Positions 34,701 to 60,547 of a stretch of 64,000 nucleotides of DNA are shown here, piece by piece. The first letter of the stretch is position 1, and every line of letters begins with the position of its first letter. The position numbers were made by a program, and so were the translations under genes. This DNA comes from Macrostomum hystrix (Eukaryota > Animalia > Platyhelminthes), in contig CATNEN010000005.1 of the NCBI GenBank assembly GCA_950097015.1, forward strand, positions 2,604,001 to 2,668,000, given 5' to 3'. A model generated the notes under the pieces. That model worked only from the letters and a program-made list of their open reading frames with translations, had not been told where the DNA came from and did not search any database.

Positions 34701-37700
34701 TGCTAATCTATTCTCATTGATTGAGTGAGCATGGATTGCTAATCTATTCTCATTGATTGAGAAAGCATGGATTGCTAATCTATTCTCATTAATTGAGAAA
34801 GCATGGATTGCTAATCTATTCTCATTGATTGAGAAAGCATGGATTGCTAATCTATTCTCATTGATTGAGAAAGCATGGATTGCTAATCTATTCTCATTGA
34901 TTGAGAAAGCATGGATTGCTAATCTATTCTCATTGATTGAGAAAGCATGGATTGCTAATCTATTCTCATTGATTGAGAGAGCATGGATTGCTAATCTATT
35001 CTCATTAATTGAGTGAGCATGGATTGCTAATCTATTCTCATTGATTGAGAGAGCATGGATTGCTAATCTATTCTCATTAATTGAGTGAGCATGGATTGCT
35101 AATCTATTCTCATTGATTGAGAGAGCATGGATTGCTAATCTATTCTCATTAATTGAGTGAGCATGGATTGCTAATCTATTCTCATTAATTGAGTGAGCAT
35201 GGATTGCTAATCTATTCTCATTGATTGAGAAAGCATGGATTGCTAATCTATTCTCATTGATTGAGAGAGCATGGATTGCTAATCTATTCTCATTAATTGA
35301 GTGAGCATGGATTGCTAATCTATTCTCATTGATTGAGAAAGCATGGATTGCTAATCTATTCTCATTGATTGAGAAAGCATGGATTGCTAATCTATTCTCA
35401 TTGATTGAGAGAGCATGGATTGCTAATCTATTCTCATTGATTGAGAAAGCATGGATTGCTAATCTATTCTCATTGATTGAGAAAGCATGGATTGCTAATC
35501 TATTCTCATTGATTGAGAGAGCATGGATTGCTAATCTATTCTCATTAATTGAGTGAGCATGGATTGCTAATCTATTATCATTGATTGAGAGAGCATGGAT
35601 TGCTAATCTATTCTCATTAATTGAGTGAGCATGGATTGCTAATCTATTCTCATTGATTGAGAGAGCATGGATTGCTAATCTATTCTCATTAATTGAGTGA
35701 GCATGGATTGCTAATCTATTCTCATTAATTGAGTGAGCATGGATTGCTAATCTATTCTCATTGATTGAGAAAGCATGGATTGCTAATCTATTCTCATTGA
35801 TTGAGAGAGCATGGATTGCTAATCTATTCTCATTGATTGAGAAAGCATGGATTGCTAATCTATTCTCATTGATTGAGAGAGCATGGATTGTTAATCTATT
35901 CTCATTGATTGAGAAAGCATGGATTGCTAATCTATTCTCATTGATTGAGAAAGCATGGATTGCTAATCTATTCTCATTGATTGAGAGAGCATGGATTGCT
36001 AATCTATTCTCATTAATTGAGTGAGCATGGATTGCTAATCTATTATCATTGATTGAGAGAGCATGGATTGCTAATCTATTCTCATTAATTGAGAAAGCAT
36101 GGATTGCTAATCTATTCTCATTGATTGAGAAAGCATGGATTGCTAATCTATTCTCATTGATTGAGTGAGCATGGATTGCTAATCTATTCTCATTGATTGA
36201 GAGAGCATGGATTGCTAATCTATTCTCATTGATTGAGAGAGCATGGATTGCTAATCTATTCTCATTAATTGAGTGAGCATGGATTGCTAATCTATTCTCA
36301 TTAATTGAGTGAGCATGGATTGCTAATCTATTCTCATTAATTGAGTGAGCATGGATTGCTAATCTATTCTCATTGATTGAGTGAGCATGGATTGCTAATC
36401 TATTCTCATTGATTGAGAAAGCATGGATTGCTAATCTATTCTCATTAATTGAGAAAGCATGGATTGCTAATCTATTCTCATTGATTGAGAAAGCATGGAT
36501 TGCTAATCTATTCTCATTGATTGAGAAAGCATGGATTGCTAATCTATTCTCATTGATTGAGAAAGCATGGATTGCTAATCTATTCTCATTGATTGAGAAA
36601 GCATGGATTGCTAATCTATTCTCATTGATTGAGAGAGCATGGATTGCTAATCTATTCTCATTAATTGAGTGAGCATGGATTGCTAATCTATTATCATTGA
36701 TTGAGAGAGCATGGATTGCTAATCTATTCTCATTAATTGAGTGAGCATGGATTGCTAATCTATTCTCATTGATTGAGAGAGCATGGATTGCTAATCTATT
36801 CTCATTAATTGAGTGAGCATGGATTGCTAATCTATTCTCATTAATTGAGTGAGCATGGATTGCTAATCTATTCTCATTGATTGAGAAAGCATGGATTGCT
36901 AATCTATTCTCATTGATTGAGAAAGCATGGATTGCTAATCTATTCTCATTGATTGAGAGAGCATGGATTGCTAATCTATTCTCATTGATTGAGAAAGCAT
37001 GGATTGCTAATCTATTCTCATTGATTGAGTGAGCATGGATTGCTAATCTATTCTCATTAATTGAGTGAGCATGGATTGCTAATCTATTCTCATTGATTGA
37101 GAAAGCATGGATTGCTAATCTATTCTCATTGATTGAGTGAGCATGGATTGCTAATCTATTCTCATTGATTGAGAGAGCATGGATTGCTAATCTATTCTCA
37201 TTGATTGAGAGAGCATGGATTGCTAATCTATTCTCATTGATTGAGAAAGCATGGATTGCTAATCTATTCTCATTGATTGAGTGAGCATGGATTGCTAATC
37301 TATTCTCATTGATTGAGAGAGCATGGATTGCTAATCTATTCTCATTGATTGAGTGAGCATGGATTGCTAATCTATTCTCATTGATTGAGAGAGCATGGAT
37401 TGCTAATCTATTCTCATTGATTGAGAAAGCATGGATTGCTAATCTATTCTCATTGATTGAGAAAGCAGGGATTGCATAATCTATTCTCATTGATTGAGAG
37501 AGCATGGATTGCTAATCTATTCTCATTGATTGAGAGAGCATGGATTGCTAATCTATTCTCATTGATTGAGAAAGCATGGATTGCTAATCTATTCTCATTA
37601 ATTGAGTGAGCATGGATTGCTAATCTATTCTCATTGATTGAGTGAGCATGGATTGCTAATCTATTCTCATTAATTGAGAAAGCATGGATTGCTAATCTAT

Positions 37701-40700
37701 TCTCATTGATTGAGAAAGCATGGATTGCTAATCTATTCTCATTGATTGAGTGAGCATGGATTGCTAATCTATTCTCATTGATTGAGAGAGCATGGATTGC
37801 TAATCTATTCTCATTGATTGAGAGAGCATGGATTGCTAATCTATTCTCATTAATTGAGTGAGCATGGATTGCTTATCTATTCTCATTGATTGAGTGAGCG
37901 TGGATTGCTAATCTATTCTCATTGATTGAGAGAGCATGGATTGCTAATCTATTCTCATTGATTGAGAAAGCATGGATTGCTAATCTATTCTCATTGATTG
38001 AGAAAGCATGGATTGCTAATCTATTCTCATTGATTGAGAAAGCATGGATTGCTAATCTATTCTCATTGATTGAGAGAGCATGGATTGCTAATCTATTCTC
38101 ATTGATTGAGAAAGCATGGATTGCTAATCTATTCTCATTGATTGAGAGAGCATGGATTGCTAATCTATTCTCATTAATTGAGTGAGCATGGATTGCTAAT
38201 CTATTCTCATTAATTGAGTGAGCATGGATTGCTAATCTATTCTCATTGATTGAGAGAGCATGGATTGCTAATCTATTCTCATTGATTGAGAAAGCATGGA
38301 TTGCTAATCTATTCTCATTGATTGAGTGAGCATGGATTGCTAATCTATTCTCATTGATTGAGTGAGCATGGATTGCTAATCTATTCTCATTGATTGAGAG
38401 AGCATGGATTGCTAATCTATTCTCATTGATTGAGAGAGCATGGATTGCTAATCTATTCTCATTGATTGAGAGAGCATGGATTGCTAATCTATTCTCATTA
38501 ATTGAGTGAGCATGGATTGCTAATCTATTCTCATTGATTGAGTGAGCATGGATTGCTAATCTATTCTTATTGATTGAGAGAGCATGGATTGCTAATCTAT
38601 TCTCATTGATTGAGAAAGCATGGATTGCTAATCTATTCTCATTGATTGAGAAAGCATGGATTGCTAATCTATTCTCATTGATTGAGTGAGCATGGATTGC
38701 TAATCTATTCTCATTGATTGAGAAAGCATGGATTGCTAATCTATTCTCATTGATTGAGTGAGCATGGATTGCTAATCTATTCTCATTGATTGAGAGAGCA
38801 TGGATTGTTAATCTATTCTCATTGATTGAGAGAGCATGGATTGTTAATCTATTCTCATTGATTGAGAGAGCATGGATTGCTAATCTATTCTCATTGATTG
38901 AGAAAGCATGGATTGCTAATCTATTCTCATTGATTGAGAGAGCATGGATTGCTAATCTATTCTCATTGATTGAGAGAGCATGGATTGCTAATCTATTCTC
39001 ATTGATTGAGAGAGCATGGATTGTTAATCTATTCTCATTGATTGAGAGAGCATGGATTGCTAATCTATTCTCATTGATTGAGAGAGCATGGATTGCTAAT
39101 CTATTCTCATTGATTGAGTGAGCATGGATTGCTAATCTATTCTCATTGATTCTCATTGATCTATAGACAATCTACGCTTGTTCGTTGGTATATCTATAGA
39201 CAGTCCACACTTATTGATCTATCGATAGTTTATCAAGTAAACAGGTATCTATGGATAGATAATCTAACCTGTCCTCGTCTTCCTCGGCAATCACAGAATA
39301 ATCCTGCAGGGATAATTTCGCCCTAGGCTCCAGGAAGATGTTGCTGGAATTGAACCGCCTGATGACAATAGATTTGGCATGCAGGTAACCCGCTGCCTGA
39401 GCCAGGTCTCGAATGATTGACAGGCGCTGACCGCTGCCAAGCTTCTCCTTGCGCACGTGAATTGTCTCGTACAGTGAGACGCCCTTTCTCAGACAAGTGA
39501 CAACAGCGAAGCTCGACGTAGAAGGGTCCATAGAAGCGCCCATGAATAGGAAAATGTTCTCGTGACGGATTAGACTCAGCTTAGCGATCTCCTCCCAGAA
39601 CCTGCTTCGCTCCTGCGAATCCAGGTTCTCGTAGGCGTGGATGGTCACCTCGCCGTGCCAGTGACCCCTGCAGCACGAATTTGGGATTTTTTATGGAACT
39701 ACTATATGTGTATAGGATTGGGATTTTGCTTAGGATTAGTGTTCTATGGGTACTCTAGATCTATGGGATATTTTAGGATTAGCCCTCTAAAGCTATGGGA
39801 TATTTTAGGATTAGCCCTCTTGATCCATGGGATATTTTAGAATTAGTCCTATAGATATTTAGGTTCTTTTTGTATTCGGGCTCGGGCTCTTTGATATTAG
39901 ACCACAAATTCTACTCTATGTCTGTGTTCACGAACGACTGTGGGAGACGGGATAAAAGGTAGCGACATTCAACGTCAGCTCAATGAGCGAACTCACTTGC
40001 AGACTCTTCGCCTCTTGCCGCGCAGAATGCACTCGCGATACTCGATGTCCTCGTGCGGTATGTTGAACTCGAACTCCTTCACCTCGAAACTGCTCGGGCA
40101 TCAAATGGGTGGGATTTCGGTAGAAAAAATGGCTCGACAGTTAATTAGTTCTTGGCATTTTTTATTTTGCTTCAGATTTTTCTTATTTGAGTTTTAAGTT
40201 TTGGGATTTAAGTTTTAAGTTTTGAGATTTGAGTTTTACGTTTTGGGATTTGAGTTTTAAGTTTTGGGATTTGAGTTTTAAGTTTTGGGATTTGAGTTTT
40301 AAGTTTTGGGATTTGAGTTTTAAGTTTTGGGATTTGAGTTTCAGTTTTGGGATTTGAGTTTTATGTTTTGGGATTTGAGTTTTAAGTTTTGGGATTTGAG
40401 TTTTAAGTTTTGGGATTTGAGTTTCAAGTTTTGGGATTTGAGTTTTAAGTTTTGGGATTTGAGTTTTAAGTTTTGGGATTTGAGTTTTAAGTTTTGGGAT
40501 TTGAGTTTTAAGTTTTGGGATTTGAGTTTTAAGTTTTGGGATTTGAGTTTTAAGTTTTAAGATTTGAGTTTTACGTTTTGGGATTTCAGTTTTAAGTTTT
40601 GGGATTTGAGTTTTAAGTTTTGGGATTTGAGTTTCAAGTTTTGGGATTTGAGTTTTAAGTTTTGGGATTTGAGTTTTAAGTTTTGGGATTTGAGTTTTAA

Positions 40701-43700: not shown

Positions 43701-44232
43701 TCAAAATTTCATGCTCAGATCCAAGTCTCAAAATCTCATTCTTTCTGGCATCAGAGATTGCAAAAAGGAAGACTTCAAAAGCACGTCAAACTCAGGCGGC
43801 CGAGACACTCACCCAGAGCAAACAGTCTCTTGCCACTGGGTGGCCAGGTTGAGCACAGTAAATCTTTCTGTTGTCGGGCAGTTTGAGACTGCAGACTCTT
43901 GCTCTTAGCCGGCGGTTGAGTCAGCGTGCTTTGATGATCCAATGAGCTGCGCATCCTGCTCACCACCTGCCTGGGATTGTGCCGCTGCAGCAGGTCATAA
44001 TCTACCTGAACATCCCATTGCACTGTAGGCTGCTGCTGCAACTGGTGCTGCTGCCTTTGCTGCTGCTGCTGCTGCTGCTGCTGCAGGGAGTCTTCATCGT
44101 ATTGCTGATAGGTGCAGTACCTTTGGACATGTTGCTGCTGCTGCTGCTGACTAAGCTGATGGTTTGGTTGCTGCACCTGATAAGGCTGCTGTCGAGACTG
44201 CTGCTGCTGACAGAACGAATGCTGCGACTGTT

Positions 44233-44269
<37 letters not shown>

Positions 44270-46117
44270 ATATCCAAAATCAGACAGGCCGTCTTCGTTT
44301 CCGCCCCGGCAGCTGCTGCCAGAGACAAAGAAGTCGCCATTCGTTGACGCGGTGGAGACGGAGCAAGCAGACGAAGGGCTCAGGCTTGTGTAATAGTGCA
44401 GCAGGTAGTCGCTATCGATGCTGCTGTTCATGCTCATGACGTTGCGCGCGTGCATGAGATCCGAGCTGCTGCATTCCTGTGGAAATTGCGGACAGGCGAT
44501 GTTCAAATAGGAGGCGCTGTCTCCGCCGCCAAAGTCGGAGCCGCCTTCGAAAGCGTCGGTAGTTGACGAGGCGCCGTCGTTGTCGCCCGTGCCGCCGCCG
44601 CCGCCGTTGCCGCCACCAGATGCCGCTGCCACCGACGCTTTCGACTCCAGCAGCCATTTGGTAAAGAAGCCTTTAAGATTGGCCAGTATGTTCGGCGATC
44701 CGGACGACGACGAGGCGGCCGACGGAGCGGCGACGGCTGCCACAGCAGCCGCTTCCAGCGCCGATTTTCGCAGCTCCCGACGAAGTCGCGAAGCGGCCGA
44801 CGAGCCGCCGGACGATTTTCGACTCTTTCTCGACGAGGATGCTGTGGACGCGGACGATGATACCGACGATCGGACAGCGCCCACGCCCTGCGCCTCGGAT
44901 GCGGACGGGTAGAACGGCGTGGTTGCTACGGCGTTGCTATGCACGATGCAGTACTCAGACTCGTCGAACAGCTCGTGCTGCTGATAGTCTATGGCATTCT
45001 GCCGCACAGCTGGCTGATGCCGTCCGGAATGAGCGCGACTTCTTGGCCGCCGCTGCTGCTGCTGATGCTGCTGGGCTAGGGGCAGACTCGATGGAGGCGG
45101 CAGCGGTGGCGACGAGACAGCACGCGGTTTTCCAGCGAGAGCTCCGGAACTGTTGATTTTAACAACATCAATATCCTGACATCACACTGCAAAGTTCTGT
45201 CAGCACTATCCTGACATCACACTGCAAAGTTCTGTCAGCACTATCCTGACATCACACTAATAAGTTCTGTCAGCAACATCCTGACATCACACTGCAAAGT
45301 TCTGTCAGCACTATCCTGACATCACACTAATAAGTTCTGTCAGCAATATCCTGACATCACACTGCAAAGTTCTGTCAGCACTATCCTGACATCACACTGC
45401 AAAGTTCAATCAGCACTATCCTGACATCACACTAATAAGTTCTGTCAGCACTATCCTGACATCACACTGCAAAGTTCTGTCAGCAATATCCTGACATCAC
45501 ACTGCAAAGTTCCATCAGCAACATCCTGACATCACACTGCAAAGTTCTGTCAGCACTATCTTGACATCACACTAATAAGTTCTGTCAGCAATATCCTGAC
45601 ATCACACTGCAAAGTTCTGTCAACACTATCCTGACATCACACTAATAAGTTCTGTCAGCAATATCCTGACATCACACTAATAAGTTCTGTCAGCAATATC
45701 CTGACATCACACTGCAAAGTTCTGTCAACACTATCCTGACATCACACTGCAAAGTTCTGTCAACACTATCCTGACATCACACTGCAAAGTTCTGTCAGCA
45801 ATATCCTGACATCACGCTGCAAAGTTCTGTCAGCACTATCCTGACATCACACTAATAAGTTCTGTCAGCAATATCCTGACATCACACTAATAAGTTCTGT
45901 CAGCACTATCCTGACATCACACTGCAAAGTTCTGTCAGCACTATCCTGACATCACACTGCAAAGTTCAATCAGCAATATCCTGACATCACACTGCAAAGT
46001 TCTGTCAGCACTATCAATAAGTGACAAAGCTTTGCACCTAAAAGTAAATTTTACTCACCAACCAGACGACGCAGATTCCGTTAGCTTAGAACCATTGCCA
46101 AGTCCAATAGCTGACAT
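22708..46117 (-). CDS. ksr3: KSR/RAF-family pseudokinase (KSR3-like), 9 exons, 795 aa, with Ser/Gln-rich low-complexity N-terminus
   Basis: Exons 46059-46117, 43813-45149, 42472-42547, 39997-40089, 39269-39667, 24894-25025, 24673-24802, 22864-22944, 22708-22788 splice in frame (2388 nt). Kinase fold matches KSR: EFNIPHEDI, GHWHGEVTI, IRHENIFLFMGA, GYLHAKSIV, WYTPPEI, TDIFAF, CWNHDP..RPEF, and a C-terminal HSSSEPENLH resembling the RAF RSxSEPxLH 14-3-3 site. Family call is strong; the KSR3 subfamily and the first exon are less certain. Confidence 0.8.
23060..24560. repeat. Compound 16-bp / 70-bp minisatellite in kinase intron 7
   Basis: CACAGAAATCCCAGTT units interspersed with a 70-bp unit containing AGTGAACTAGTGTTCAGTGTCTAGTGTTATCCCACTGGGATT. 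Confidence 0.94.
26200..27387 (+). CDS. sgms: Sphingomyelin synthase family protein (SMS/SGMS-like, no SAM domain), intronless CDS nested in kinase intron 5
   Basis: Uninterrupted ORF from ATG 26200 with SMS motifs D1 PPLPD, D2 RRIFF..G.L...R.VTIFVT.LP, D3 CGDYIFSGHT and D4 HGHYTIDILLGY (catalytic H/H/D intact), several hydrophobic TM segments and a C-terminal LPYEFDLPWP. Candidate splice acceptor (tttgtcgtcacag) at 26151-26152. Confidence 0.92.
   Translation: MTANGAPASSTVPAATESSASMTALVSTEQHQNGCYKHNPDTVINFANGNCMSGKRACCQNGDDNRSTVISMPSACLHSFDASADESDDSLSSSQPVLSDFCRAFLSLLFMLGGMGLTAVSLIFVHERVPSSPPLPDVLLTRVTHVPWALDVCEYLLIVTIAATYSTAFLHRYRWIVLRRIFFMIGVLFAYRSVTIFVTALPSPSPTYYCEPKHNGGLGFDDIISRLLRLARGGGFSINGNHVYCGDYIFSGHTTILTLGYLVIQEYTSPRLTVLHWTSWVVSVTGVAFLVLSHGHYTIDILLGYWVTTRLWWMYHTAANFSGQRKHGYFRRACWWRAFLFFESGRRCQGPLPYEFDLPWPRIGASVAASVLYLARCWHSATELAVQVCRRIRQI
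27893..28975. repeat. 17-bp C-rich minisatellite
   Basis: Unit CACCCCGCCAAACCCCT, with higher-order blocks. Confidence 0.94.
30124..30195 (+). promoter_or_regulatory. Candidate Pol II core promoter (2x CCAAT + TATA), possibly LTR-derived
   Basis: CCAGCCAATG at 30124 and 30151, TATAAATA at 30188-30195, followed by a GC-rich ~250-bp stretch. No downstream gene identified. Confidence 0.35.
30690..30890. repeat. 27-bp minisatellite
   Basis: Unit GGGATTTCCTAAGGATTCCCCTTTCAT. Confidence 0.88.
31549..39145. repeat. 36-bp satellite, ~7.6 kb (~210 copies), in kinase intron 5
   Basis: Unit TTGATTGAGAGAGCATGGATTGCTAATCTATTCTCA with GAGA/GAAA/GTGA and TGAT/TAAT variants. It is the source of the 2019-aa and 427-aa repeat ORFs. 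Confidence 0.97.
40200..41900. repeat. Two separate 21-bp minisatellites in kinase intron 3
   Basis: TTTTGGGATTTGAGTTTTAAG (~40200-40790) and GGGATATTGGGGAGAGGAGAT (~41600-41900). Confidence 0.92.
42197..42427. repeat. 77-bp triple repeat with E-box and CCAAT motifs
   Basis: Units begin at 42197, 42274 and 42351, each CAC[G]YGAC..AGCCAATCA..GTTAACAT..GGCTA. Confidence 0.85.
42645..43740. repeat. 27-bp minisatellite filling kinase intron 2
   Basis: Unit TTAGATCCAAGTCTCAAAATCTCATGC, ~40 copies. Confidence 0.95.
45172..46014. repeat. 35-bp minisatellite filling kinase intron 1
   Basis: Unit ATCCTGACATCACACTGCAAAGTTCTGTCAGCACT, ~24 copies. Confidence 0.95.
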
Positions 46118-47049: not shown

Positions 47050-50000
47050 GCCACCCTTATCCTCTGTGCTACATCATTATCCCCTGTGCTACATCTCTAT
47101 CCCCTGTGCCACATCTCTATCCCCTGTGCCACATCTCTATCCTCTGTGCCACATCTCTATCCCCTGTGCCACATCTCTATCCTCTGTGCCACATCTCTAT
47201 CCTTTGTGCTACATCTCTATCCTCTGTGCCATATCTCTATTCTCTATCCTCTGTGCCACATCATTATCCTCTGTGCTACATCATTATCCCCTGTGCTACA
47301 TCTCTATCCCCTGTGCTACATCTCTATCCCCTGTGCTACATCTCTATCCCCTGTGCCACATCTCTATCCTCTGTGCTACATCTCTATCCTCTGTGCCACA
47401 TCTCAGGGGCGAGTGGGGTCAGCGGCTAACGTCGCTGCCTCGCACTCCAAAGGACGCTAGTTCGATTCACCCTTCAAGTCACGATTAATTTCGGTACTTG
47501 TTCGGGGGGTTCGGACAGTAGCGACCGGCGGAGGTGCACCATATTTCGTGCAATCAAAGCTTGAAAAATAGCTTCGCTCCTACCTTCTGTGTGACTGTTC
47601 TGCGTTGTATGAGTTATGTGCGTTGGCGCTGGGGCGTTAGACCTTGCGGGGGGTGGCTGGGGGGCGGGTGTACACCGCCGCGTGCTCATCTGGATTTCCG
47701 TCAGCGCGATTGGATAAAGTGTACACTCGCCACCCGGCCCCCCCTGAGGACTGATTTCTATCAGCCTTCCGCCCCGGCTTGGTCTGCTCTGTGCGTGTGC
47801 GGGCCTGGGGTGAGAGGCACTCCGGCTGCCGCCCCCTTCCCCGCTTAGCTTGCTGCTGTGTGTGTGAGGTGCCTGCTCAGGGGAGGCGGCGCGATGGGCG
47901 GCTTTCGCCTAGTTCGCCGGCCTGGGGGCATGCCGTTCCTGTGTCTGTGCGTCAGGTGCCCCAGGCCCCCCTGCAAAGTAAGTAAGTAAGTAAGTGCCAC
48001 ATCTCTATCCTCTGTGCTACATCTCTATCCCCTGTGCCACATCTCTATCCTCTGTGCCACATCTCTATCCCCTGTGCTACATCTCTATCCTCTGTGCCAC
48101 ATCTCTATCCTCTGTGCTACATCTCAATCCTCTGTGCCACATCTCTATCCTCTGTGCCACATCTCTATCCTCTGTGCCACATCTCTATCCCCTGTGCTAC
48201 ATCTCTATCCTCTGTGCTACATCTCAATCCTCTGTGCCACATCTCTATCCTCTGTGCCACATCTCTATCCTCTGTGCCACATCTCTATCCCCTGTGCTAC
48301 ATCTCTATCCTCTGTGCTACATCTCAATCCTCTGTGCCACATAATTATCCCCTGTGCTACATCTCTATCCCCTGTGCTACATCTCTATCCCCTGTGCCAC
48401 ATCTCTATCCTCTGTGCCACATCTCTATCCTCTGTGCCACATCTCTATCCCCTGTGTCACATCTCTATCCTCTGTGCCACATCTCTATCCTGTGTGCTAC
48501 ATCTCTATCCCCTGTGCCACATCTCTATCCTCTGTGCCACATCTCTATCCCCTGTGCCACATCTCTATCCTCTGTGCCACATCTCTATCCTTTGTGCTAC
48601 ATCTCTATCCTCTGTGCCATATCTCTATTCTCTATCCTCTGTGCCACATCATTATCCTCTGTGCTACATCATTATCCCCTGTGCTACATCTCTATCCCCT
48701 GTGCTACATCTCTATCCCCTGTGCTACATCTCTATCCCCTGTGCCACATCTCTATCCTCTGTGCTACATCTCTATCCTCTGTGCCACATCTCAGGGGCGA
48801 GTGGGGTCAGCGGCTAACGTCGCTGCCTCGCACTCCAAAGGACGCTAGTTCGATTCACCCTTCAAGTCACGATTAATTTCGGTACTTGTTCGGGGGGTTC
48901 GGACAGTAGCGACCGGCGGAGGTGCACCATATTTCGTGCAATCAAAGCTTGAAAAATAGCTTCGCTCCTACCTTCTGTGTGACTGTTCTGCGTTGTATGA
49001 GTTATGTGCGTTGGCGCTGGGGCGTTAGACCTTGCGGGGGGTGGCTGGGGGGCGGGTGTACACCGCCGCGTGCTCATCTGGATTTCCGTCAGCGCGATTG
49101 GATAAAGTGTACACTCGCCACCCGGCCCCCCCTGAGGACTGATTTCTATCAGCCTTCCGCCCCGGCTTGGTCTGCTCTGTGCGTGTGCGGGCCTGGGGTG
49201 AGAGGCACTCCGGCTGCCGCCCCCTTCCCCGCTTAGCTTGCTGCTGTGTGTGTGAGGTGCCTGCTCAGGGGAGGCGGCGCGATGGGCGGCTTTCGCCTAG
49301 TTCGCCGGCCTGGGGGCATGCCGTTCCTGTGTCTGTGCGTCAGGTGCCCCAGGCCCCCCTGCAAAGTAAGTAAGTAAGTAAGTGCCACATCTCTATCCTC
49401 TGTGCTACATCTCTATCCCCTGTGCCACATCTCTATCCTCTGTGCCACATCTCTATCCCCTGTGCTACATCTCTATCCTCTGTGCCACATCTCTATCCTC
49501 TGTGCTACATCTCAATCCTCTGTGCCACATCTCTATCCTCTGTGCCACATCTCTATCCTCTGTGCCACATCTCTATCCCCTGTGCTACATCTCTATCCTC
49601 TGTGCTACATCTCAATCCTCTGTGCCACATCTCTATCCTCTGTGCCACATCTCTATCCTCTGTGCCACATCTCTATCCCCTGTGCTACATCTCTATCCTC
49701 TGTGCTACATCTCAATCCTCTGTGCCACATAATTATCCCCTGTGCTACATCTCTATCCCCTGTGCTACATCTCTATCCCCTGTGCCACATCTCTATCCTC
49801 TGTGCCACATCTCTATCCTCTGTGCCACATCTCTATCCCCTGTGTCACATCTCTATCCTCTGTGCCACATCTCTATCCTGTGTGCTACATCTCTATCCCC
49901 TGTGCTACATCTCTATCCCCTGTGCCACATCTCTATCCTCTGTGCCACATCTCTATCCTGTGTGCTACATCTCTATCCTCTGTGCCACATCTCAGGGGCG

Positions 50001-53000
50001 AGTGGGGTCAGCGGCTAACGTCGCTGCCTCGCACTCCAAAGGACGCTAGTTCGATTCACCCTTCAAGTCACGATTAATTTCGGTACTTGTTCGGGGGGTT
50101 CGGACAGTAGCGACCGGCGGAGGTGCACCATATTTCGTGCAATCAAAGCTTGAAAAATAGCTTCGCTCCTACCTTCTGTGTGACTGTTCTGCGTTGTATG
50201 AGTTATGTGCGTTGGCGCTGGGGCGTTAGACCTTGCGGGGGGTGGCTGGGGGGCGGGTGTACACCGCCGCGTGCTCATCTGGATTTCCGTCAGCGCGATT
50301 GGATAAAGTGTACACTCGCCACCCGGCCCCCCCTGAGGACTGATTTCTATCAGCCTTCCGCCCCGGCTTGGTCTGCTCTGTGCGTGTGCGGGCCTGGGGT
50401 GAGAGGCACTCCGGCTGCCGCCCCCTTCCCCGCTTAGCTTGCTGCTGTGTGTGTGAGGTGCCTGCTCAGGGGAGGCGGCGCGATGGGCGGCTTTCGCCTA
50501 GTTCGCCGGCCTGGGGGCATGCCGTTCCTGTGTCTGTGCGTCAGGTGCCCCAGGCCCCCCTGCAAAGTAAGTAAGTAAGTAAGTGCCACATCTCTATCCT
50601 CTGTGCTACATCTCTATCCCCTGTGCCACATCTCTATCCTCTGTGCCACATCTCTATCCCCTGTGCTACATCTCTATCCTCTGTGCCACATCTCTATCCT
50701 CTGTGCTACATCTCAATCCTCTGTGCCACATCTCTATCCTCTGTGCCACATCTCTATCCTCTGTGCCACATCTCTATCCCCTGTGCTACATCTCTATCCT
50801 CTGTGCTACATCTCAATCCTCTGTGCCACATCTCTATCCTCTGTGCCACATCTCTATCCTCTGTGCCACATCTCTATCCCCTGTGCTACATCTCTATCCT
50901 CTGTGCTACATCTCAATCCTCTGTGCCACATAATTATCCCCTGTGCTACATCTCTATCCCCTGTGCTACATCTCTATCCCCTGTGCCACATCTCTATCCT
51001 CTGTGCCACATCTCTATCCTCTGTGCCACATCTCTATCCCCTGTGTCACATCTCTATCCTCTGTGCCACATCTCTATCCTGTGTGCTACATCTCTATCCC
51101 CTGTGCCACATCTCTATCCTCTGTGCCACATCTCTATCCCCTGTGCCACATCTCTATCCTCTGTGCCACATCTCTATCCTTTGTGCTACATCTCTATCCT
51201 CTGTGCCATATCTCTATTCTCTATCCTCTGTGCCACATCATTATCCTCTGTGCTACATCATTATCCCCTGTGCTACATCTCTATCCCCTGTGCTACATCT
51301 CTATCCCCTGTGCTACATCTCTATCCCCTGTGCCACATCTCTATCCTCTGTGCTACATCTCTATCCTCTGTGCCACATCTCAGGGGCGAGTGGGGTCAGC
51401 GGCTAACGTCGCTGCCTCGCACTCCAAAGGACGCTAGTTCGATTCACCCTTCAAGTCACGATTAATTTCGGTACTTGTTCGGGGGGTTCGGACAGTAGCG
51501 ACCGGCGGAGGTGCACCATATTTCGTGCAATCAAAGCTTGAAAAATAGCTTCGCTCCTACCTTCTGTGTGACTGTTCTGCGTTGTATGAGTTATGTGCGT
51601 TGGCGCTGGGGCGTTAGACCTTGCGGGGGGTGGCTGGGGGGCGGGTGTACACCGCCGCGTGCTCATCTGGATTTCCGTCAGCGCGATTGGATAAAGTGTA
51701 CACTCGCCACCCGGCCCCCCCTGAGGACTGATTTCTATCAGCCTTCCGCCCCGGCTTGGTCTGCTCTGTGCGTGTGCGGGCCTGGGGTGAGAGGCACTCC
51801 GGCTGCCGCCCCCTTCCCCGCTTAGCTTGCTGCTGTGTGTGTGAGGTGCCTGCTCAGGGGAGGCGGCGCGATGGGCGGCTTTCGCCTAGTTCGCCGGCCT
51901 GGGGGCATGCCGTTCCTGTGTCTGTGCGTCAGGTGCCCCAGGCCCCCCTGCAAAGTAAGTAAGTAAGTAAGTGCCACATCTCTATCCTCTGTGCTACATC
52001 TCTATCCCCTGTGCCACATCTCTATCCTCTGTGCCACATCTCTATCCCCTGTGCTACATCTCTATCCTCTGTGCCACATCTCTATCCTCTGTGCTACATC
52101 TCAATCCTCTGTGCCACATCTCTATCCTCTGTGCCACATCTCTATCCTCTGTGCCACATCTCTATCCCCTGTGCTACATCTCTATCCTCTGTGCTACATC
52201 TCAATCCTCTGTGCCACATCTCTATCCTCTGTGCCACATCTCTATCCTCTGTGCCACATCTCTATCCCCTGTGCTACATCTCTATCCTCTGTGCTACATC
52301 TCAATCCTCTGTGCCACATAATTATCCCCTGTGCTACATCTCTATCCCCTGTGCTACATCTCTATCCCCTGTGCCACATCTCTATCCTCTGTGCCACATC
52401 TCTATCCTCTGTGCCACATCTCTATCCCCTGTGTCACATCTCTATCCTCTGTGCCACATCTCTATCCTGTGTGCTACATCTCTATCCCCTGTGCTACATC
52501 TCTATCCCCTGTGCCACATCTCTATCCTCTGTGCCACATCTCTATCCTGTGTGCTACATCTCTATCCTCTGTGCCACATCTCAGGGGCGAGTGGGGTCAG
52601 CGGCTAACGTCGCTGCCTCGCACTCCAAAGGACGCTAGTTCGATTCACCCTTCAAGTCACGATTAATTTCGGTACTTGTTCGGGGGGTTCGGACAGTAGC
52701 GACCGGCGGAGGTGCACCATATTTCGTGCAATCAAAGCTTGAAAAATAGCTTCGCTCCTACCTTCTGTGTGACTGTTCTGCGTTGTATGAGTTATGTGCG
52801 TTGGCGCTGGGGCGTTAGACCTTGCGGGGGGTGGCTGGGGGGCGGGTGTACACCGCCGCGTGCTCATCTGGATTTCCGTCAGCGCGATTGGATAAAGTGT
52901 ACACTCGCCACCCGGCCCCCCCTGAGGACTGATTTCTATCAGCCTTCCGCCCCGGCTTGGTCTGCTCTGTGCGTGTGCGGGCCTGGGGTGAGAGGCACTC

Positions 53001-56000
53001 CGGCTGCCGCCCCCTTCCCCGCTTAGCTTGCTGCTGTGTGTGTGAGGTGCCTGCTCAGGGGAGGCGGCGCGATGGGCGGCTTTCGCCTAGTTCGCCGGCC
53101 TGGGGGCATGCCGTTCCTGTGTCTGTGCGTCAGGTGCCCCAGGCCCCCCTGCAAAGTAAGTAAGTAAGTAAGTGCCACATCTCTATCCTCTGTGCTACAT
53201 CTCTATCCCCTGTGCCACATCTCTATCCTCTGTGCCACATCTCTATCCCCTGTGCTACATCTCTATCCTCTGTGCCACATCTCTATCCTCTGTGCTACAT
53301 CTCAATCCTCTGTGCCACATCTCTATCCTCTGTGCCACATCTCTATCCTCTGTGCCACATCTCTATCCCCTGTGCTACATCTCTATCCTCTGTGCTACAT
53401 CTCAATCCTCTGTGCCACATCTCTATCCTCTGTGCCACATCTCTATCCTCTGTGCCACATCTCTATCCCCTGTGCTACATCTCTATCCTCTGTGCTACAT
53501 CTCAATCCTCTGTGCCACATAATTATCCCCTGTGCTACATCTCTATCCCCTGTGCTACATCTCTATCCCCTGTGCCACATCTCTATCCTCTGTGCCACAT
53601 CTCTATCCTCTGTGCCACATCTCTATCCCCTGTGTCACATCTCTATCCTCTGTGCCACATCTCTATCCTGTGTGCTACATCTCTATCCCCTGTGCTACAT
53701 CTCTATCCCCTGTGCCACATCTCTATCCTCTGTGCCACATCTCTATCCTGTGTGCTACATCTCTATCCCCTGTGCCACATCTCTATCCTCTGTGCCACAT
53801 CTCTATCCCCTGTGCCACATCTCTATCCTCTGTGCCACATCTCTATCCTTTGTGCTACATCTCTATCCTCTGTGCCATATCTCTATTCTCTATCCTCTGT
53901 GCCACATCATTATCCTCTGTGCTACATCATTATCCCCTGTGCTACATCTCTATCCCCTGTGCCACATCTCTATCCTCTGTGCTACATCTCTATCCTCTGT
54001 GCCACATCTCAGGGGCGAGTGGGGTCAGCGGCTAACGTCGCTGCCTCGCACTCCAAAGGACGCTAGTTCGATTCACCCTTCAAGTCACGATTAATTTCGG
54101 TACTTGTTCGGGGGGTTCGGACAGTAGCGACCGGCGGAGGTGCACCATATTTCGTGCAATCAAAGCTTGAAAAATAGCTTCGCTCCTACCTTCTGTGTGA
54201 CTGTTCTGCGTTGTATGAGTTATGTGCGTTGGCGCTGGGGCGTTAGACCTTGCGGGGGGTGGCTGGGGGGCGGGTGTACACCGCCGCGTGCTCATCTGGA
54301 TTTCCGTCAGCGCGATTGGATAAAGTGTACACTCGCCACCCGGCCCCCCCTGAGGACTGATTTCTATCAGCCTTCCGCCCCGGCTTGGTCTGCTCTGTGC
54401 GTGTGCGGGCCTGGGGTGAGAGGCACTCCGGCTGCCGCCCCCTTCCCCGCTTAGCTTGCTGCTGTGTGTGTGAGGTGCCTGCTCAGGGGAGGCGGCGCGA
54501 TGGGCGGCTTTCGCCTAGTTCGCCGGCCTGGGGGCATGCCGTTCCTGTGTCTGTGCGTCAGGTGCCCCAGGCCCCCCTGCAAAGTAAGTAAGTAAGTAAG
54601 TGCCACATCTCTATCCTCTGTGCTACATCTCTATCCCCTGTGCCACATCTCTATCCTCTGTGCCACATCTCTATCCCCTGTGCTACATCTCTATCCTCTG
54701 TGCCACATCTCTATCCTCTGTGCTACATCTCAATCCTCTGTGCCACATCTCTATCCTCTGTGCCACATCTCTATCCTCTGTGCCACATCTCTATCCCCTG
54801 TGCTACATCTCTATCCTCTGTGCTACATCTCAATCCTCTGTGCCACATCTCTATCCTCTGTGCCACATCTCTATCCTCTGTGCCACATCTCTATCCCCTG
54901 TGCTACATCTCTATCCTCTGTGCTACATCTCAATCCTCTGTGCCACATAATTATCCCCTGTGCTACATCTCTATCCCCTGTGCTACATCTCTATCCCCTG
55001 TGCCACATCTCTATCCTCTGTGCCACATCTCTATCCTCTGTGCCACATCTCTATCCCCTGTGTCACATCTCTATCCTCTGTGCCACATCTCTATCCTGTG
55101 TGCTACATCTCTATCCCCTGTGCTACATCTCTATCCCCTGTGCCACATCTCTATCCTCTGTGCCACATCTCTATCCTGTGTGCTACATCTCTATCCCCTG
55201 TGCCACATCTCTATCCTCTGTGCCACATCTCTATCCCCTGTGCCACATCTCTATCCTCTGTGCCACATCTCTATCCTTTGTGCTACATCTCTATCCTCTG
55301 TGCCATATCTCTATTCTCTATCCTCTGTGCCACATCATTATCCTCTGTGCTACATCATTATCCCCTGTGCTACATCTCTATCCCCTGTGCTACATCTCTA
55401 TCCCCTGTGCTACATCTCTATCCCCTGTGCCACATCTCTATCCTCTGTGCTACATCTCTATCCTCTGTGCCACATCTCAGGGGCGAGTGGGGTCAGCGGC
55501 TAACGTCGCTGCCTCGCACTCCAAAGGACGCTAGTTCGATTCACCCTTCAAGTCACGATTAATTTCGGTACTTGTTCGGGGGGTTCGGACAGTAGCGACC
55601 GGCGGAGGTGCACCATATTTCGTGCAATCAAAGCTTGAAAAATAGCTTCGCTCCTACCTTCTGTGTGACTGTTCTGCGTTGTATGAGTTATGTGCGTTGG
55701 CGCTGGGGCGTTAGACCTTGCGGGGGGTGGCTGGGGGGCGGGTGTACACCGCCGCGTGCTCATCTGGATTTCCGTCAGCGCGATTGGATAAAGTGTACAC
55801 TCGCCACCCGGCCCCCCCTGAGGACTGATTTCTATCAGCCTTCCGCCCCGGCTTGGTCTGCTCTGTGCGTGTGCGGGCCTGGGGTGAGAGGCACTCCGGC
55901 TGCCGCCCCCTTCCCCGCTTAGCTTGCTGCTGTGTGTGTGAGGTGCCTGCTCAGGGGAGGCGGCGCGATGGGCGGCTTTCGCCTAGTTCGCCGGCCTGGG

Positions 56001-59000
56001 GGCATGCCGTTCCTGTGTCTGTGCGTCAGGTGCCCCAGGCCCCCCTGCAAAGTAAGTAAGTAAGTAAGTGCCACATCTCTATCCTCTGTGCTACATCTCT
56101 ATCCCCTGTGCCACATCTCTATCCTCTGTGCCACATCTCTATCCCCTGTGCTACATCTCTATCCTCTGTGCCACATCTCTATCCTCTGTGCTACATCTCA
56201 ATCCTCTGTGCCACATCTCTATCCTCTGTGCCACATCTCTATCCTCTGTGCCACATCTCTATCCCCTGTGCTACATCTCTATCCTCTGTGCTACATCTCA
56301 ATCCTCTGTGCCACATCTCTATCCTCTGTGCCACATCTCTATCCTCTGTGCCACATCTCTATCCCCTGTGCTACATCTCTATCCTCTGTGCTACATCTCA
56401 ATCCTCTGTGCCACATAATTATCCCCTGTGCTACATCTCTATCCCCTGTGCTACATCTCTATCCCCTGTGCCACATCTCTATCCTCTGTGCCACATCTCT
56501 ATCCTCTGTGCCACATCTCTATCCCCTGTGTCACATCTCTATCCTCTGTGCCACATCTCTATCCTGTGTGCTACATCTCTATCCCCTGTGCCACATCTCT
56601 ATCCTCTGTGCCACATCTCTATCCCCTGTGCCACATCTCTATCCTCTGTGCCACATCTCTATCCTTTGTGCTACATCTCTATCCTCTGTGCCATATCTCT
56701 ATTCTCTATCCTCTGTGCCACATCATTATCCTCTGTGCTACATCATTATCCCCTGTGCTACATCTCTATCCCCTGTGCTACATCTCTATCCCCTGTGCTA
56801 CATCTCTATCCCCTGTGCCACATCTCTATCCTCTGTGCTACATCTCTATCCTCTGTGCCACATCTCAGGGGCGAGTGGGGTCAGCGGCTAACGTCGCTGC
56901 CTCGCACTCCAAAGGACGCTAGTTCGATTCACCCTTCAAGTCACGATTAATTTCGGTACTTGTTCGGGGGGTTCGGACAGTAGCGACCGGCGGAGGTGCA
57001 CCATATTTCGTGCAATCAAAGCTTGAAAAATAGCTTCGCTCCTACCTTCTGTGTGACTGTTCTGCGTTGTATGAGTTATGTGCGTTGGCGCTGGGGCGTT
57101 AGACCTTGCGGGGGGTGGCTGGGGGGCGGGTGTACACCGCCGCGTGCTCATCTGGATTTCCGTCAGCGCGATTGGATAAAGTGTACACTCGCCACCCGGC
57201 CCCCCCTGAGGACTGATTTCTATCAGCCTTCCGCCCCGGCTTGGTCTGCTCTGTGCGTGTGCGGGCCTGGGGTGAGAGGCACTCCGGCTGCCGCCCCCTT
57301 CCCCGCTTAGCTTGCTGCTGTGTGTGTGAGGTGCCTGCTCAGGGGAGGCGGCGCGATGGGCGGCTTTCGCCTAGTTCGCCGGCCTGGGGGCATGCCGTTC
57401 CTGTGTCTGTGCGTCAGGTGCCCCAGGCCCCCCTGCAAAGTAAGTAAGTAAGTAAGTGCCACATCTCTATCCTCTGTGCTACATCTCTATCCCCTGTGCC
57501 ACATCTCTATCCTCTGTGCCACATCTCTATCCCCTGTGCTACATCTCTATCCTCTGTGCCACATCTCTATCCTCTGTGCTACATCTCAATCCTCTGTGCC
57601 ACATCTCTATCCTCTGTGCCACATCTCTATCCTCTGTGCCACATCTCTATCCCCTGTGCTACATCTCTATCCTCTGTGCTACATCTCAATCCTCTGTGCC
57701 ACATCTCTATCCTCTGTGCCACATCTCTATCCTCTGTGCCACATCTCTATCCCCTGTGCTACATCTCTATCCTCTGTGCTACATCTCAATCCTCTGTGCC
57801 ACATAATTATCCCCTGTGCTACATCTCTATCCCCTGTGCTACATCTCTATCCCCTGTGCCACATCTCTATCCTCTGTGCCACATCTCTATCCTCTGTGCC
57901 ACATCTCTATCCCCTGTGTCACATCTCTATCCTCTGTGCCACATCTCTATCCTGTGTGCTACATCTCTATCCCCTGTGCTACATCTCTATCCCCTGTGCC
58001 ACATCTCTATCCTCTGTGCCACATCTCTATCCTGTGTGCTACATCTCTATCCCCTGTGCCACATCTCTATCCTCTGTGCCACATCTCTATCCCCTGTGCC
58101 ACATCTCTATCCTCTGTGCCACATCTCTATCCTTTGTGCTACATCTCTATCCTCTGTGCCATATCTCTATTCTCTATCCTCTGTGCCACATCATTATCCT
58201 CTGTGCTACATCATTATCCCCTGTGCTACATCTCTATCCCCTGTGCTACATCTCTATCCCCTGTGCTACATCTCTATCCCCTGTGCCACATCTCTATCCT
58301 CTGTGCTACATCTCTATCCTCTGTGCCACATCTCAGGGGCGAGTGGGGTCAGCGGCTAACGTCGCTGCCTCGCACTCCAAAGGACGCTAGTTCGATTCAC
58401 CCTTCAAGTCACGATTAATTTCGGTACTTGTTCGGGGGGTTCGGACAGTAGCGACCGGCGGAGGTGCACCATATTTCGTGCAATCAAAGCTTGAAAAATA
58501 GCTTCGCTCCTACCTTCTGTGTGACTGTTCTGCGTTGTATGAGTTATGTGCGTTGGCGCTGGGGCGTTAGACCTTGCGGGGGGTGGCTGGGGGGCGGGTG
58601 TACACCGCCGCGTGCTCATCTGGATTTCCGTCAGCGCGATTGGATAAAGTGTACACTCGCCACCCGGCCCCCCCTGAGGACTGATTTCTATCAGCCTTCC
58701 GCCCCGGCTTGGTCTGCTCTGTGCGTGTGCGGGCCTGGGGTGAGAGGCACTCCGGCTGCCGCCCCCTTCCCCGCTTAGCTTGCTGCTGTGTGTGTGAGGT
58801 GCCTGCTCAGGGGAGGCGGCGCGATGGGCGGCTTTCGCCTAGTTCGCCGGCCTGGGGGCATGCCGTTCCTGTGTCTGTGCGTCAGGTGCCCCAGGCCCCC
58901 CTGCAAAGTAAGTAAGTAAGTAAGTGCCACATCTCTATCCTCTGTGCTACATCTCTATCCCCTGTGCCACATCTCTATCCTCTGTGCCACATCTCTATCC

Positions 59001-59950
59001 CCTGTGCTACATCTCTATCCTCTGTGCCACATCTCTATCCTCTGTGCTACATCTCAATCCTCTGTGCCACATCTCTATCCTCTGTGCCACATCTCTATCC
59101 TCTGTGCCACATCTCTATCCCCTGTGCTACATCTCTATCCTCTGTGCTACATCTCAATCCTCTGTGCCACATCTCTATCCTCTGTGCCACATCTCTATCC
59201 TCTGTGCCACATCTCTATCCCCTGTGCTACATCTCTATCCTCTGTGCTACATCTCAATCCTCTGTGCCACATAATTATCCCCTGTGCTACATCTCTATCC
59301 CCTGTGCTACATCTCTATCCCCTGTGCCACATCTCTATCCTCTGTGCCACATCTCTATCCTCTGTGCCACATCTCTATCCCCTGTGTCACATCTCTATCC
59401 TCTGTGCCACATCTCTATCCTGTGTGCTACATCTCTATCCCCTGTGCTACATCTCTATCCCCTGTGCCACATCTCTATCCTCTGTGCCACATCTCTATCC
59501 TCTGTGCCACATCTCTATCCCCTGTGTCACATCTCTATCCTCTGTGCCACATCTCTATCCTGTGTGCTACATCTCTATCCTCTGTGCCATATCTCTATTC
59601 TCTATCCTCTGTGCCACATCATTATCCTCTGTGCTACATCATTATCCCCTGTGCTACATCTCTATCCCCTGTGCTACATCTCTATCCCCTGTGCTACATC
59701 TCTATCCCCTGTGCCACATCTCTATCCTCTGTGCTACATCTCTATCCTCTGTGCCACATCTCTATCCTCTGTGCTACATCGCTATCCTCTGTGCCACATC
59801 TCTATCCTCTGTGCCACATCTCTATCCTCTGTGCCACATCTCTATCCTCTGTGCCACATCCCTATCCCCTGTGCCACATCTCTATCCTCTGTGCCACATC
59901 TCTATACCCTGTGCCACATCTTTATCCTCTGTGCCACATCTCTATCCCTC
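47050..59950. repeat. 20-bp minisatellite (ACATCTCTATCCTCTGTGCC) hosting the SINE array
   Basis: Direct reading. Diagnostic variant units (CTCAATCC, ATAATTATCC, GTGTCACA, +7-nt TCTCTAT) recur in each spacer. It grades into a related TCACATCTCTATCCATTCTT repeat at ~59950-60165. Confidence 0.97.
47405..58923 (+). mobile_element. Nine tandem copies of a 589-bp tRNA-derived SINE-like element (family B), separated by minisatellite
   Basis: Copies start at 47405, 48793, 49994, 51382, 52583, 54011, 55479, 56867 and 58335. Each has a tRNA-like head (GTGGGGTCAGCGGCTAA A-box-like, GTTCGATTC B box), an (AAGT)4 tail and an apparent 12-bp TSD GTGCCACATCTC. ORF-track translations are identical across all nine copies. 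Confidence 0.85.
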
Positions 59951-60547
59951 TCTTTCACATCTCTATCCCTCTTTTTCACATCTCTATTCTTTCTTTCACA
60001 TCTCTATCCATTCTTTCACATCTCTATCCTTTCTTTCACATCTCTATCCATTCTTTCACATCTCTATCCATTCTTTCACATCTCTATCCATTCTTTCACA
60101 TCTCTATCCTTTCTTTCACATCTCTATCCATTCTTTCACATCTCTATCCATTCTTTCACATCTCTTGACCTGTTTTGCAGCAACTCTTAATCAGTTCCGT
60201 ATGAATAGATACAATTACATGTGTTCAAATGCAGTATATAACACAGTTACGGCACAAGTAATCAGTTTTTAGTCACTATCTTAACCGGCGATAAAAGTAC
60301 ATTTACATTGCCTTATATTTCAAAAAGGTTTTTTGGCTGTTGAGAAAATATAAGTAACTTTATACAATGAACAGCCCACTATACTGTACTGGGATAAATC
60401 AATAAGTTTTTTCTTCAGAAATTTTCTGAACTTTAGTGAGCGGGCGGGGGAGGCACAGTACTTGATTATGTATACTGTATTATATTATAGTTAGATTCAT
60501 TACCTATTAGTATTGTTCAACGCATAGTATTTGGTTAAAGAAACCTA

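Follow-up and report, generated by a model that had tools for sequence, protein, structure and literature searches.

A tandem array of nine identical SINE copies in a locus-specific minisatellite of Macrostomum hystrix

Structure and single origin of the array

A 64-kb stretch of the genome of the flatworm Macrostomum hystrix (positions 2,604,001-2,668,000 of the 6.1-Mb contig C5, in an assembly of 220 Mb and 42 contigs; hereafter referred to as the window) contains nine complete copies of a short interspersed element (SINE), which follow each other head-to-tail within a 20-bp minisatellite found only at this locus. All nine copies descend from one insertion, and the array is extremely young. 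It was probably generated by the insertion of one SINE into the minisatellite, followed by amplification at the DNA level through unequal exchange or slippage. The process is a known one, of which the array is a new and exceptionally well-preserved case; it reveals neither a new mechanism nor a new RNA gene.

An exact string search of the window with the first 30 bases of the unit (the unit head) yielded nine copies on the + strand and none on the − strand, all nine SINE copies being in the same orientation (+). The periods between the SINE heads are, in order, 1388, 1201, 1388, 1201, 1428, 1468, 1388 and 1468 bp, which reproduces both the values and the A-B-A-B-C-D-A-D pattern given by an earlier reading of this DNA made without database searches (the sequence-only reading). 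A position-by-position comparison of the nine 587-bp SINE cores gave 0 differences, and BLAST against the whole assembly returned 100% identity at all nine array sites, so the nine units are indeed identical, as had been claimed. The previously assigned unit size of 589 bp is correct as well, or becomes 591 bp if the final GT, which is countable as tail or as target repeat, is included; the tail, however, is (AAGT)5 (47976-47995 in copy 1) and not (AAGT)4. Analysis with Tandem Repeats Finder (TRF) confirmed that the DNA between the SINE copies is a 20-bp minisatellite. The tandem structure spans positions 47058 to about 60149 of the window and ends with a tenth unit without a SINE (Table 1). 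No open reading frame (ORF) of at least 150 aa is present inside a SINE unit, and the listed ORFs are read-throughs of the minisatellite.

The unit belongs to a family of elements dispersed over the genome. A BLAST search of the whole assembly with the unit produced 560 candidates, and the 31 copies scored outside of the array are full-length, 96-98% identical and spread over many contigs on both strands. Searching with a 31-mer from the head and allowing up to two mismatches gave 339 genome matches (172 on the + and 167 on the − strand), compared to 0 for the reversed control. Eleven dispersed copies, all full-length and 97-98% identical to the array unit, were inspected individually: every one of them is bordered by its own target-site duplication of 10-15 bp, with sequences that are all different, and carries an (AAGT)n tail with n ranging from about 2.5 to 6. 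The start of the target-site duplication often overlaps the SINE tail by AG, GT or AAG, and such tail-overlapping, copy-specific direct repeats are a signature of target-primed reverse transcription. Subfamilies can be recognised among the dispersed copies, whose mean pairwise divergence is 1.7%. Judged by its behaviour, namely dispersal, occurrence on both strands, target-site duplications and a simple tail, the element is supported as a SINE-type retroposon, which justifies the name it had been given from the sequence alone. Within this family of some 340 copies or more, those of the array are nothing out of the ordinary, and what sets them apart is their duplication as DNA; among the first 100 of the 339 head matches listed, the array on contig C5 is the sole same-strand periodic cluster. 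A partner long interspersed element (LINE) was not found among the 30 best RVT_1 loci, whose sequences with 1.5-kb flanks showed neither similarity to the SINE nor an (AAGT)3 motif, many LINE families being unsampled in this set, and a literature search retrieved no report on SINEs of the genus Macrostomum. As a side observation, the tail (AAGT)n, read as (GTAA)n, contains repeated GTAAGT, which is the consensus core of a 5' splice site. SINE insertions in sense orientation in introns or exons could therefore supply strong donor sites.

The common descent of the nine copies is evident from their sequence and their position. The array unit shows ten differences from the majority base of the dispersed copies, most of which are subfamily markers common to loci L010-L013. 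Two substitutions are private to the array, an A for C at unit position 190 and an A for G at position 443, and exact 31-mers centred on each of these bases occur 9 times each in the 220-Mb genome, always in the array. All nine copies are placed after the same target, GTGCCACATCTC, and have equal tail lengths and equal flanks. The private substitutions together with the identical tail lengths and flanks exclude independent insertions and trace all nine SINE copies back to a single one. Because the private 31-mers are confined to the array, no retroposed offspring of the array is present in the assembly.

To describe the spacers, we coded each 20-bp repeat by its exact sequence, which resulted in a variant-repeat map. 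On the left side of copy 1, unique DNA is followed by 17 repeats, including a distinctive 27-bp variant (type H), and the last repeat of this left flank is cut to GTGCCACATCTC. After each of the nine SINEs, the remainder of the split repeat is followed by the same map of 25 repeats. Every spacer between two SINEs (8/8) represents this right-flank map fused to the end part of the left-flank map, of which 15 repeats are retained in types A and D and fewer in types B and C. Such a joint is impossible with a single insertion left unduplicated and indicates that DNA from the two sides of one insertion recombined out of register. The spacers comprise 610-880 bp of minisatellite and fall into four types, with spacers of the same length being identical in sequence (first, third and seventh; second and fourth; sixth and eighth). 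Relative to type D, type A lacks one contiguous block of 80 bp (four repeats), type B one contiguous block of 267 bp (twelve 20-bp repeats and the 27-bp variant), and type C one contiguous block of 40 bp (two repeats). No base substitutions occur among the spacer types, which differ by whole repeats only. Because type D is the longest and each of the others is one deletion away from it, D is probably the ancestral spacer, and types A, B and C are likely to be ordinary minisatellite deletions derived from it; conversions of A to B or of C to A are not possible in one step. The interleaved order A-B-A-B-C-D-A-D points to multi-unit duplications, as in unequal exchange between misaligned arrays. 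A two-repeat pattern of the 20-bp minisatellite matched the genome 181 times, with 181/181 matches in the window, and the idea that the minisatellite is part of a larger dispersed element was rejected because all these matches are at this locus.

The right end of the array preserves a target site without an insertion. Of the eight 27-bp variant repeats in the window, seven are followed by a SINE, at a distance of 179 bp in six cases and of 139 bp in type C, which has two repeats fewer; the two type-B units have lost the variant. The eighth 27-bp variant at position 59584 is followed by the same series of repeats and then by an intact repeat at 59751-59770, consisting of GTGCCACATCTC and TATCCTCT, with no SINE. 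This repeat is a paralogous empty target site. Its intact state confirms a target-site duplication of 10-12 bp, and the presence of a SINE-free unit indicates that higher-order duplication had affected part of the minisatellite before the SINE insertion. The chimeric spacers, the whole-repeat deletions and the empty site agree with the previous suggestion that the minisatellite acted as a recombination substrate.

No substitutions were found in about 9,800 site-lineages, which cover 587 bp of SINE and 502 bp of the right-flank map in the nine units. This corresponds to a divergence of less than about 0.03% per lineage (95% level), as opposed to 0.34% of private change in the progenitor and to the mean pairwise divergence within the family. 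The very young age proposed in the sequence-only reading is thus borne out by the complete lack of substitutions over about 10 kb of comparable sequence. If the private substitutions arose after the insertion, as this age comparison assumes, the amplification is at least 10 times younger than the insertion, the alternative being continuing homogenisation.

Table 1. Features of the SINE array and its minisatellite flanks (positions refer to the window; TRF, Tandem Repeats Finder).
Feature	Position	Strand	Evidence
Left edge of the 20-bp minisatellite, 17 repeats, from unique DNA to the first SINE	47058..47404	+	TRF, variant-repeat map
5' copy of the target-site duplication, GTGCCACATCTC, 12 bases ending the left edge	47393-47404	+	
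SINE copy 1, 591 bp including (AAGT)5	47405..47995	+	
A-box-like motif of SINE copy 1	47414-47425	+	
B box GTTCGATTC of SINE copy 1	47460-47468	+	
Long hairpin of SINE copy 1	47647-47746	+	
3' copy of the target-site duplication, SINE copy 1	47994-48005	+	
Spacer type A (period 1388), same sequence as the spacers following copies 3 and 7	47996..48792	+	
SINE copy 2	48793..49383	+	0 differences
Spacer type B (period 1201), same sequence as the spacer following copy 4	49384..49993	+	
SINE copy 3	49994..50584	+	
SINE copy 4	51382..51972	+	
SINE copy 5	52583..53173	+	
Spacer type C (period 1428)	53174..54010	+	
SINE copy 6	54011..54601	+	
Spacer type D (period 1468), longest, identical to the spacer after copy 8	54602..55478	+	
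SINE copy 7	55479..56069	+	
SINE copy 8	56867..57457	+	
SINE copy 9	58335..58925	+	
Right-hand minisatellite, 25-repeat map as in every spacer, then decaying toward unique DNA	58926..60149	+	TRF, repeat map
SINE-free tenth unit with the variant-repeat block as before seven of the nine SINEs	59584..59770	+	

Proposed origin of the array and alternative explanations

According to the origin we propose, one copy of the young dispersed SINE would have been retroposed into a single repeat of the locus-specific minisatellite, with GTGCCACATCTC as the target and with priming assisted by GT microhomology to the (AAGT)n tail. Out-of-register recombination or replication slippage between the right and the left minisatellite repeats would then have duplicated the SINE and the flanks on both sides of it. 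With units of 1.2-1.5 kb in place, unequal exchange of whole units could have produced the nine copies and the shuffled order of types, while ordinary minisatellite slippage may have removed whole 20-bp repeats from some of the spacers. The outcome would be a nascent higher-order repeat, i.e. a satellite at birth that contains a complete SINE. We infer that recombination of this kind built the array and that the array itself serves no function.

Several points weigh against this proposal. The left- and right-flank maps need 1-2 extra whole-repeat changes to give type D, and the first breakpoint cannot be placed exactly because the 20-bp repeats are too alike. The amplification step could equally well have consisted of gene conversion that carried the SINE into units existing beforehand; whether the SINE unit was newly duplicated or spread over units already present, the SINE copies multiplied as DNA either way. 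Moreover, another full-length copy of the same SINE (L014, C39:18714487-18715073) resides in an unrelated 20-bp minisatellite, and no second SINE is present in 10 kb upstream or 1.5 kb downstream of it. As this copy is single within that range, amplification is not a general outcome for SINEs in minisatellites, and we rejected it as their general fate. Finally, both the copy number and the order of the units could be distorted by the assembler.

The last point leads to the strongest of the alternatives, in which fewer SINE units (at least two) exist in reality and identical units of 1.2-1.5 kb were multiplied or rearranged by the assembler. The exact A-B-A-B duplicate of 2,589 bp fits such a mis-assembly, as do the 100% identity of all copies and of all same-length spacers, and the array-private 31-mers occur on no second haplotype or contig, so the assembly holds no independent copy for comparison. 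However, there are four distinct spacer types with structured variation, each of which is found between two SINEs, and the joint between right and left flank cannot be explained without a minimum of one real duplication. The assembled contig also contains, within the window, much longer and more uniform arrays, e.g. a 36-bp repeat extending over 7.6 kb, although these may be incorrect as well. An array of 13 kb fits within the span of current long reads. We therefore consider an assembly artefact unlikely as an explanation of the array.

A second alternative, put forward in the sequence-only reading, is that of a functional multi-copy RNA polymerase III (Pol III) unit or non-coding RNA (ncRNA) locus, in which the identity of the copies would be kept by selection or active homogenisation. 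Such a function would be consistent with the motifs in the SINE head. The unit contains a B box, GTTCGATTC, at unit positions 56-64, which is kept in 10 of the 11 dispersed copies, and at a suitable spacing from it an A-box-like motif, TGGGGTCAGCGG, at positions 10-21. The latter is only an approximate match to the consensus, and its first base varies between subfamilies (T, G or A), a point against this alternative. Also in favour of a transcription unit, the nine copies are co-oriented and no internal TTTT run is present in 12/12 copies, as opposed to about 2 expected from the base composition, although this is weak evidence because the copies are closely related.

The tRNA-like nature ascribed to the head is less secure, as the searches gave no support for an RNA origin beyond the B box. 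ARAGORN detected no tRNA in the unit, no Rfam family reached its threshold in a search of 20 kb at E≤1, and a search of a 606-bp unit stretch at E≤10 gave no tRNA, 5S or 7SL. The best alignment of the head with six distinct tRNAs of the same genome scored 23, compared to 19.3 ± 3.2 for shuffled heads, and the minimum-energy fold of the head is not a cloverleaf. A tRNA origin of the SINE head is therefore not demonstrable. Each SINE copy further contains a GC-rich hairpin with a stem of about 27 pairs, a folding energy of −68.8 kcal/mol and a z-score of −5.8 versus shuffles. The only Rfam hits in the unit are miRNA-like and below threshold, and they are explained by this long GC-rich hairpin.

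The remaining observations also speak against an ncRNA locus. The + strand is free of TTTT from 47050 to 59971, the first such run being at 59972, which leaves 12.5 kb without a T4 terminator; among the dispersed copies, the nearest downstream TTTT lies at 15-741 bp. Without this run on the + strand, no discrete Pol III product of about 590 nt is defined and no canonical stop is present at the end of a unit, so upstream transcripts would run into the downstream units. The array variant has left no retroposed progeny, its sequence is ordinary for the family, and the identity of the copies is equally complete in the non-SINE spacers, which fits recent duplication rather than selection on an RNA. 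As judged from sequence, a dedicated RNA locus is not supported, and we regard this explanation as improbable.

Nine co-oriented, putative internal Pol III promoters lacking a terminator might still have a consequence of another kind. Read-through transcripts in SINE-sense orientation could turn the array into a SINE trap that feeds small-RNA silencing of the family of roughly 340 copies, or the array might represent an unusually strong source locus at the very start of its retroposition. Both ideas are speculative and, in our estimate, slightly less probable still than an ncRNA locus. If either applied, rapid expansion of the array would have been favoured rather than neutral.

Amplification by a rolling circle or an extrachromosomal circle, in which the SINE and its minisatellite would have been copied as a concatemer and re-integrated at their own locus, ranks lower again. 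A circle formed between the minisatellite repeats flanking the SINE would give the observed right/left joint in each spacer, and the units derived from it would be identical. Instead of one uniform unit, however, four interleaved unit types are present, both array ends are in register with the original flanks, as for an in-place duplication, and no array-type units exist elsewhere in the genome, which makes this route very improbable. That the SINE entered one type of minisatellite repeat nine separate times by site-specific insertion is practically out of the question. Repeats of the target type are numerous in the minisatellite and share GT microhomology with the (AAGT)n tail, but the nine copies have in common two substitutions that no other copy in the genome shows, an equal tail length and identical flanking variant-repeat maps over hundreds of bases on both sides, while dispersed copies differ by 1.7% on average, and the hypothesis was rejected because the private 31-mers are found only in the nine array copies.

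Comparison with known tandem arrays of mobile elements

Tandem arrays of transposable elements (TEs) are known to expand by unequal exchange (PMC5932611, PMC9659126), and the co-amplification of TEs with tandem repeats is established (PMC5411766, PMC4857426). In Drosophila, tandem TE arrays are represented by R1 on the X chromosome, hobo with 13-19 copies, and Bari1 (McGurk and Barbash 2018, PMC5932611). Like these, the array described here consists of complete elements in head-to-tail order, goes back to one founding event and is recent and confined to a single locus, with unequal exchange as the proposed mode of growth. The Drosophila arrays start from a dimer founded by double insertion, and their units are split only by the target-site duplication (PMC5932611). 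In contrast, the recombining substrate here would be a host minisatellite that leaves 610-880 bp between the units, and the element is a SINE instead of a LINE or a DNA transposon. A tandem of the R1 or hobo type, generated by double insertion, was rejected because the spacers are longer than a target-site duplication alone.

Satellites derived from SINEs have been described in squamates, where parts of a SINE were tandemly duplicated and the satellite was formed inside the element (Vassetzky et al. 2023, PMC10702118). They share with the present array the direct tie between a SINE family and a tandem array, the small number of loci and the modest copy numbers. They differ in that the passenger here, within a higher-order unit, is a complete SINE including target-site duplication and tail, and that the repeated joint lies in the flanking minisatellite. 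Direct links between SINEs and satellites are few, and the same survey judged most of the older cases to be inconclusive (PMC10702118): a dispersed SINE that matches them is not known for newt PolIII/TAN, Xenopus satellite 1 and the PolIII repeats of Rana and Hydromantes. For the array reported here, the dispersed SINE family is documented.

Recombination has also duplicated a TE jointly with a tandem repeat, as a single larger unit, in the subtelomeric pSc200/pSc250 blocks of rye (PMC4857426) and in the duplicated Rsp-Doc5-ProtoP units of Drosophila (PMC5411766). Those cases concern large heterochromatic blocks with old, diverged copies, whereas the present array measures 13 kb, shows zero divergence, still contains the empty site and lies in a region with an intact PAP2_C-type ORF (see below). 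All parts of the record are kept within 13 kb, namely the dispersed parent family, the target-site duplication, an unoccupied target repeat, chimeric joints and unit variants that are one step apart. The locus illustrates the way in which a mobile element trapped in an unstable minisatellite turns into the unit of a new higher-order repeat, and it could serve as a fast-evolving recombination marker in a repeat-rich genome.

A true array of Pol III genes in the same genome offers a further comparison. At C38:20168238-20173388 (L024-L030), seven tRNA hits with identical scores follow each other on one strand at distances of 0.6-1.1 kb, and ARAGORN identifies those that it detects as tRNA-Arg(TCG). 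The SINE array resembles this tRNA array in its same-orientation units, its putative internal promoters of the box A/B type and its spacing, which is roughly 0.6-1.5 kb in the two arrays. The SINE units differ from the tRNA genes in matching no tRNA or Rfam family, lacking terminators and belonging to a retroposon family bounded by target-site duplications.

Genomic surroundings

Tandem repeats with a period of at least 7 cover 56% of the window, in which at least 25 unrelated minisatellite families occur side by side. The 36-bp repeat mentioned above extends over 7.6 kb at 31549-39151. Coverage by tandem repeats amounts to 50% in the 10 kb to the left of the window and 29% in the 10 kb to the right (L072/L073 flanks), and to 21% in an unrelated 10-kb stretch (L071). 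This minisatellite load is extraordinary for a genome of 220 Mb. At 26029-27387 (+) of the window, an uninterrupted ORF of 452 aa encodes a PAP2_C domain of the type known from sphingomyelin synthases or lipid phosphatases (E 1e-24). Because this ORF is located between minisatellite arrays, the region is not gene-free heterochromatin.

A hit to the bacterial sRNA family isrG at 44045-44300 (+) overlaps short GCT/CTG trinucleotide repeats at 44029-44084 and 44234-44269, and we took it as a chance match because its score of 31 bits is far below the Rfam gathering score of 100. Outside of the window, three reverse-transcriptase hits with identical scores on the same strand and exactly 6,162 bp apart are present at C38:33133164-33145973. 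This locus looks like a tandem retroelement array, and tandem arrays of TEs may thus be recurrent in this genome.

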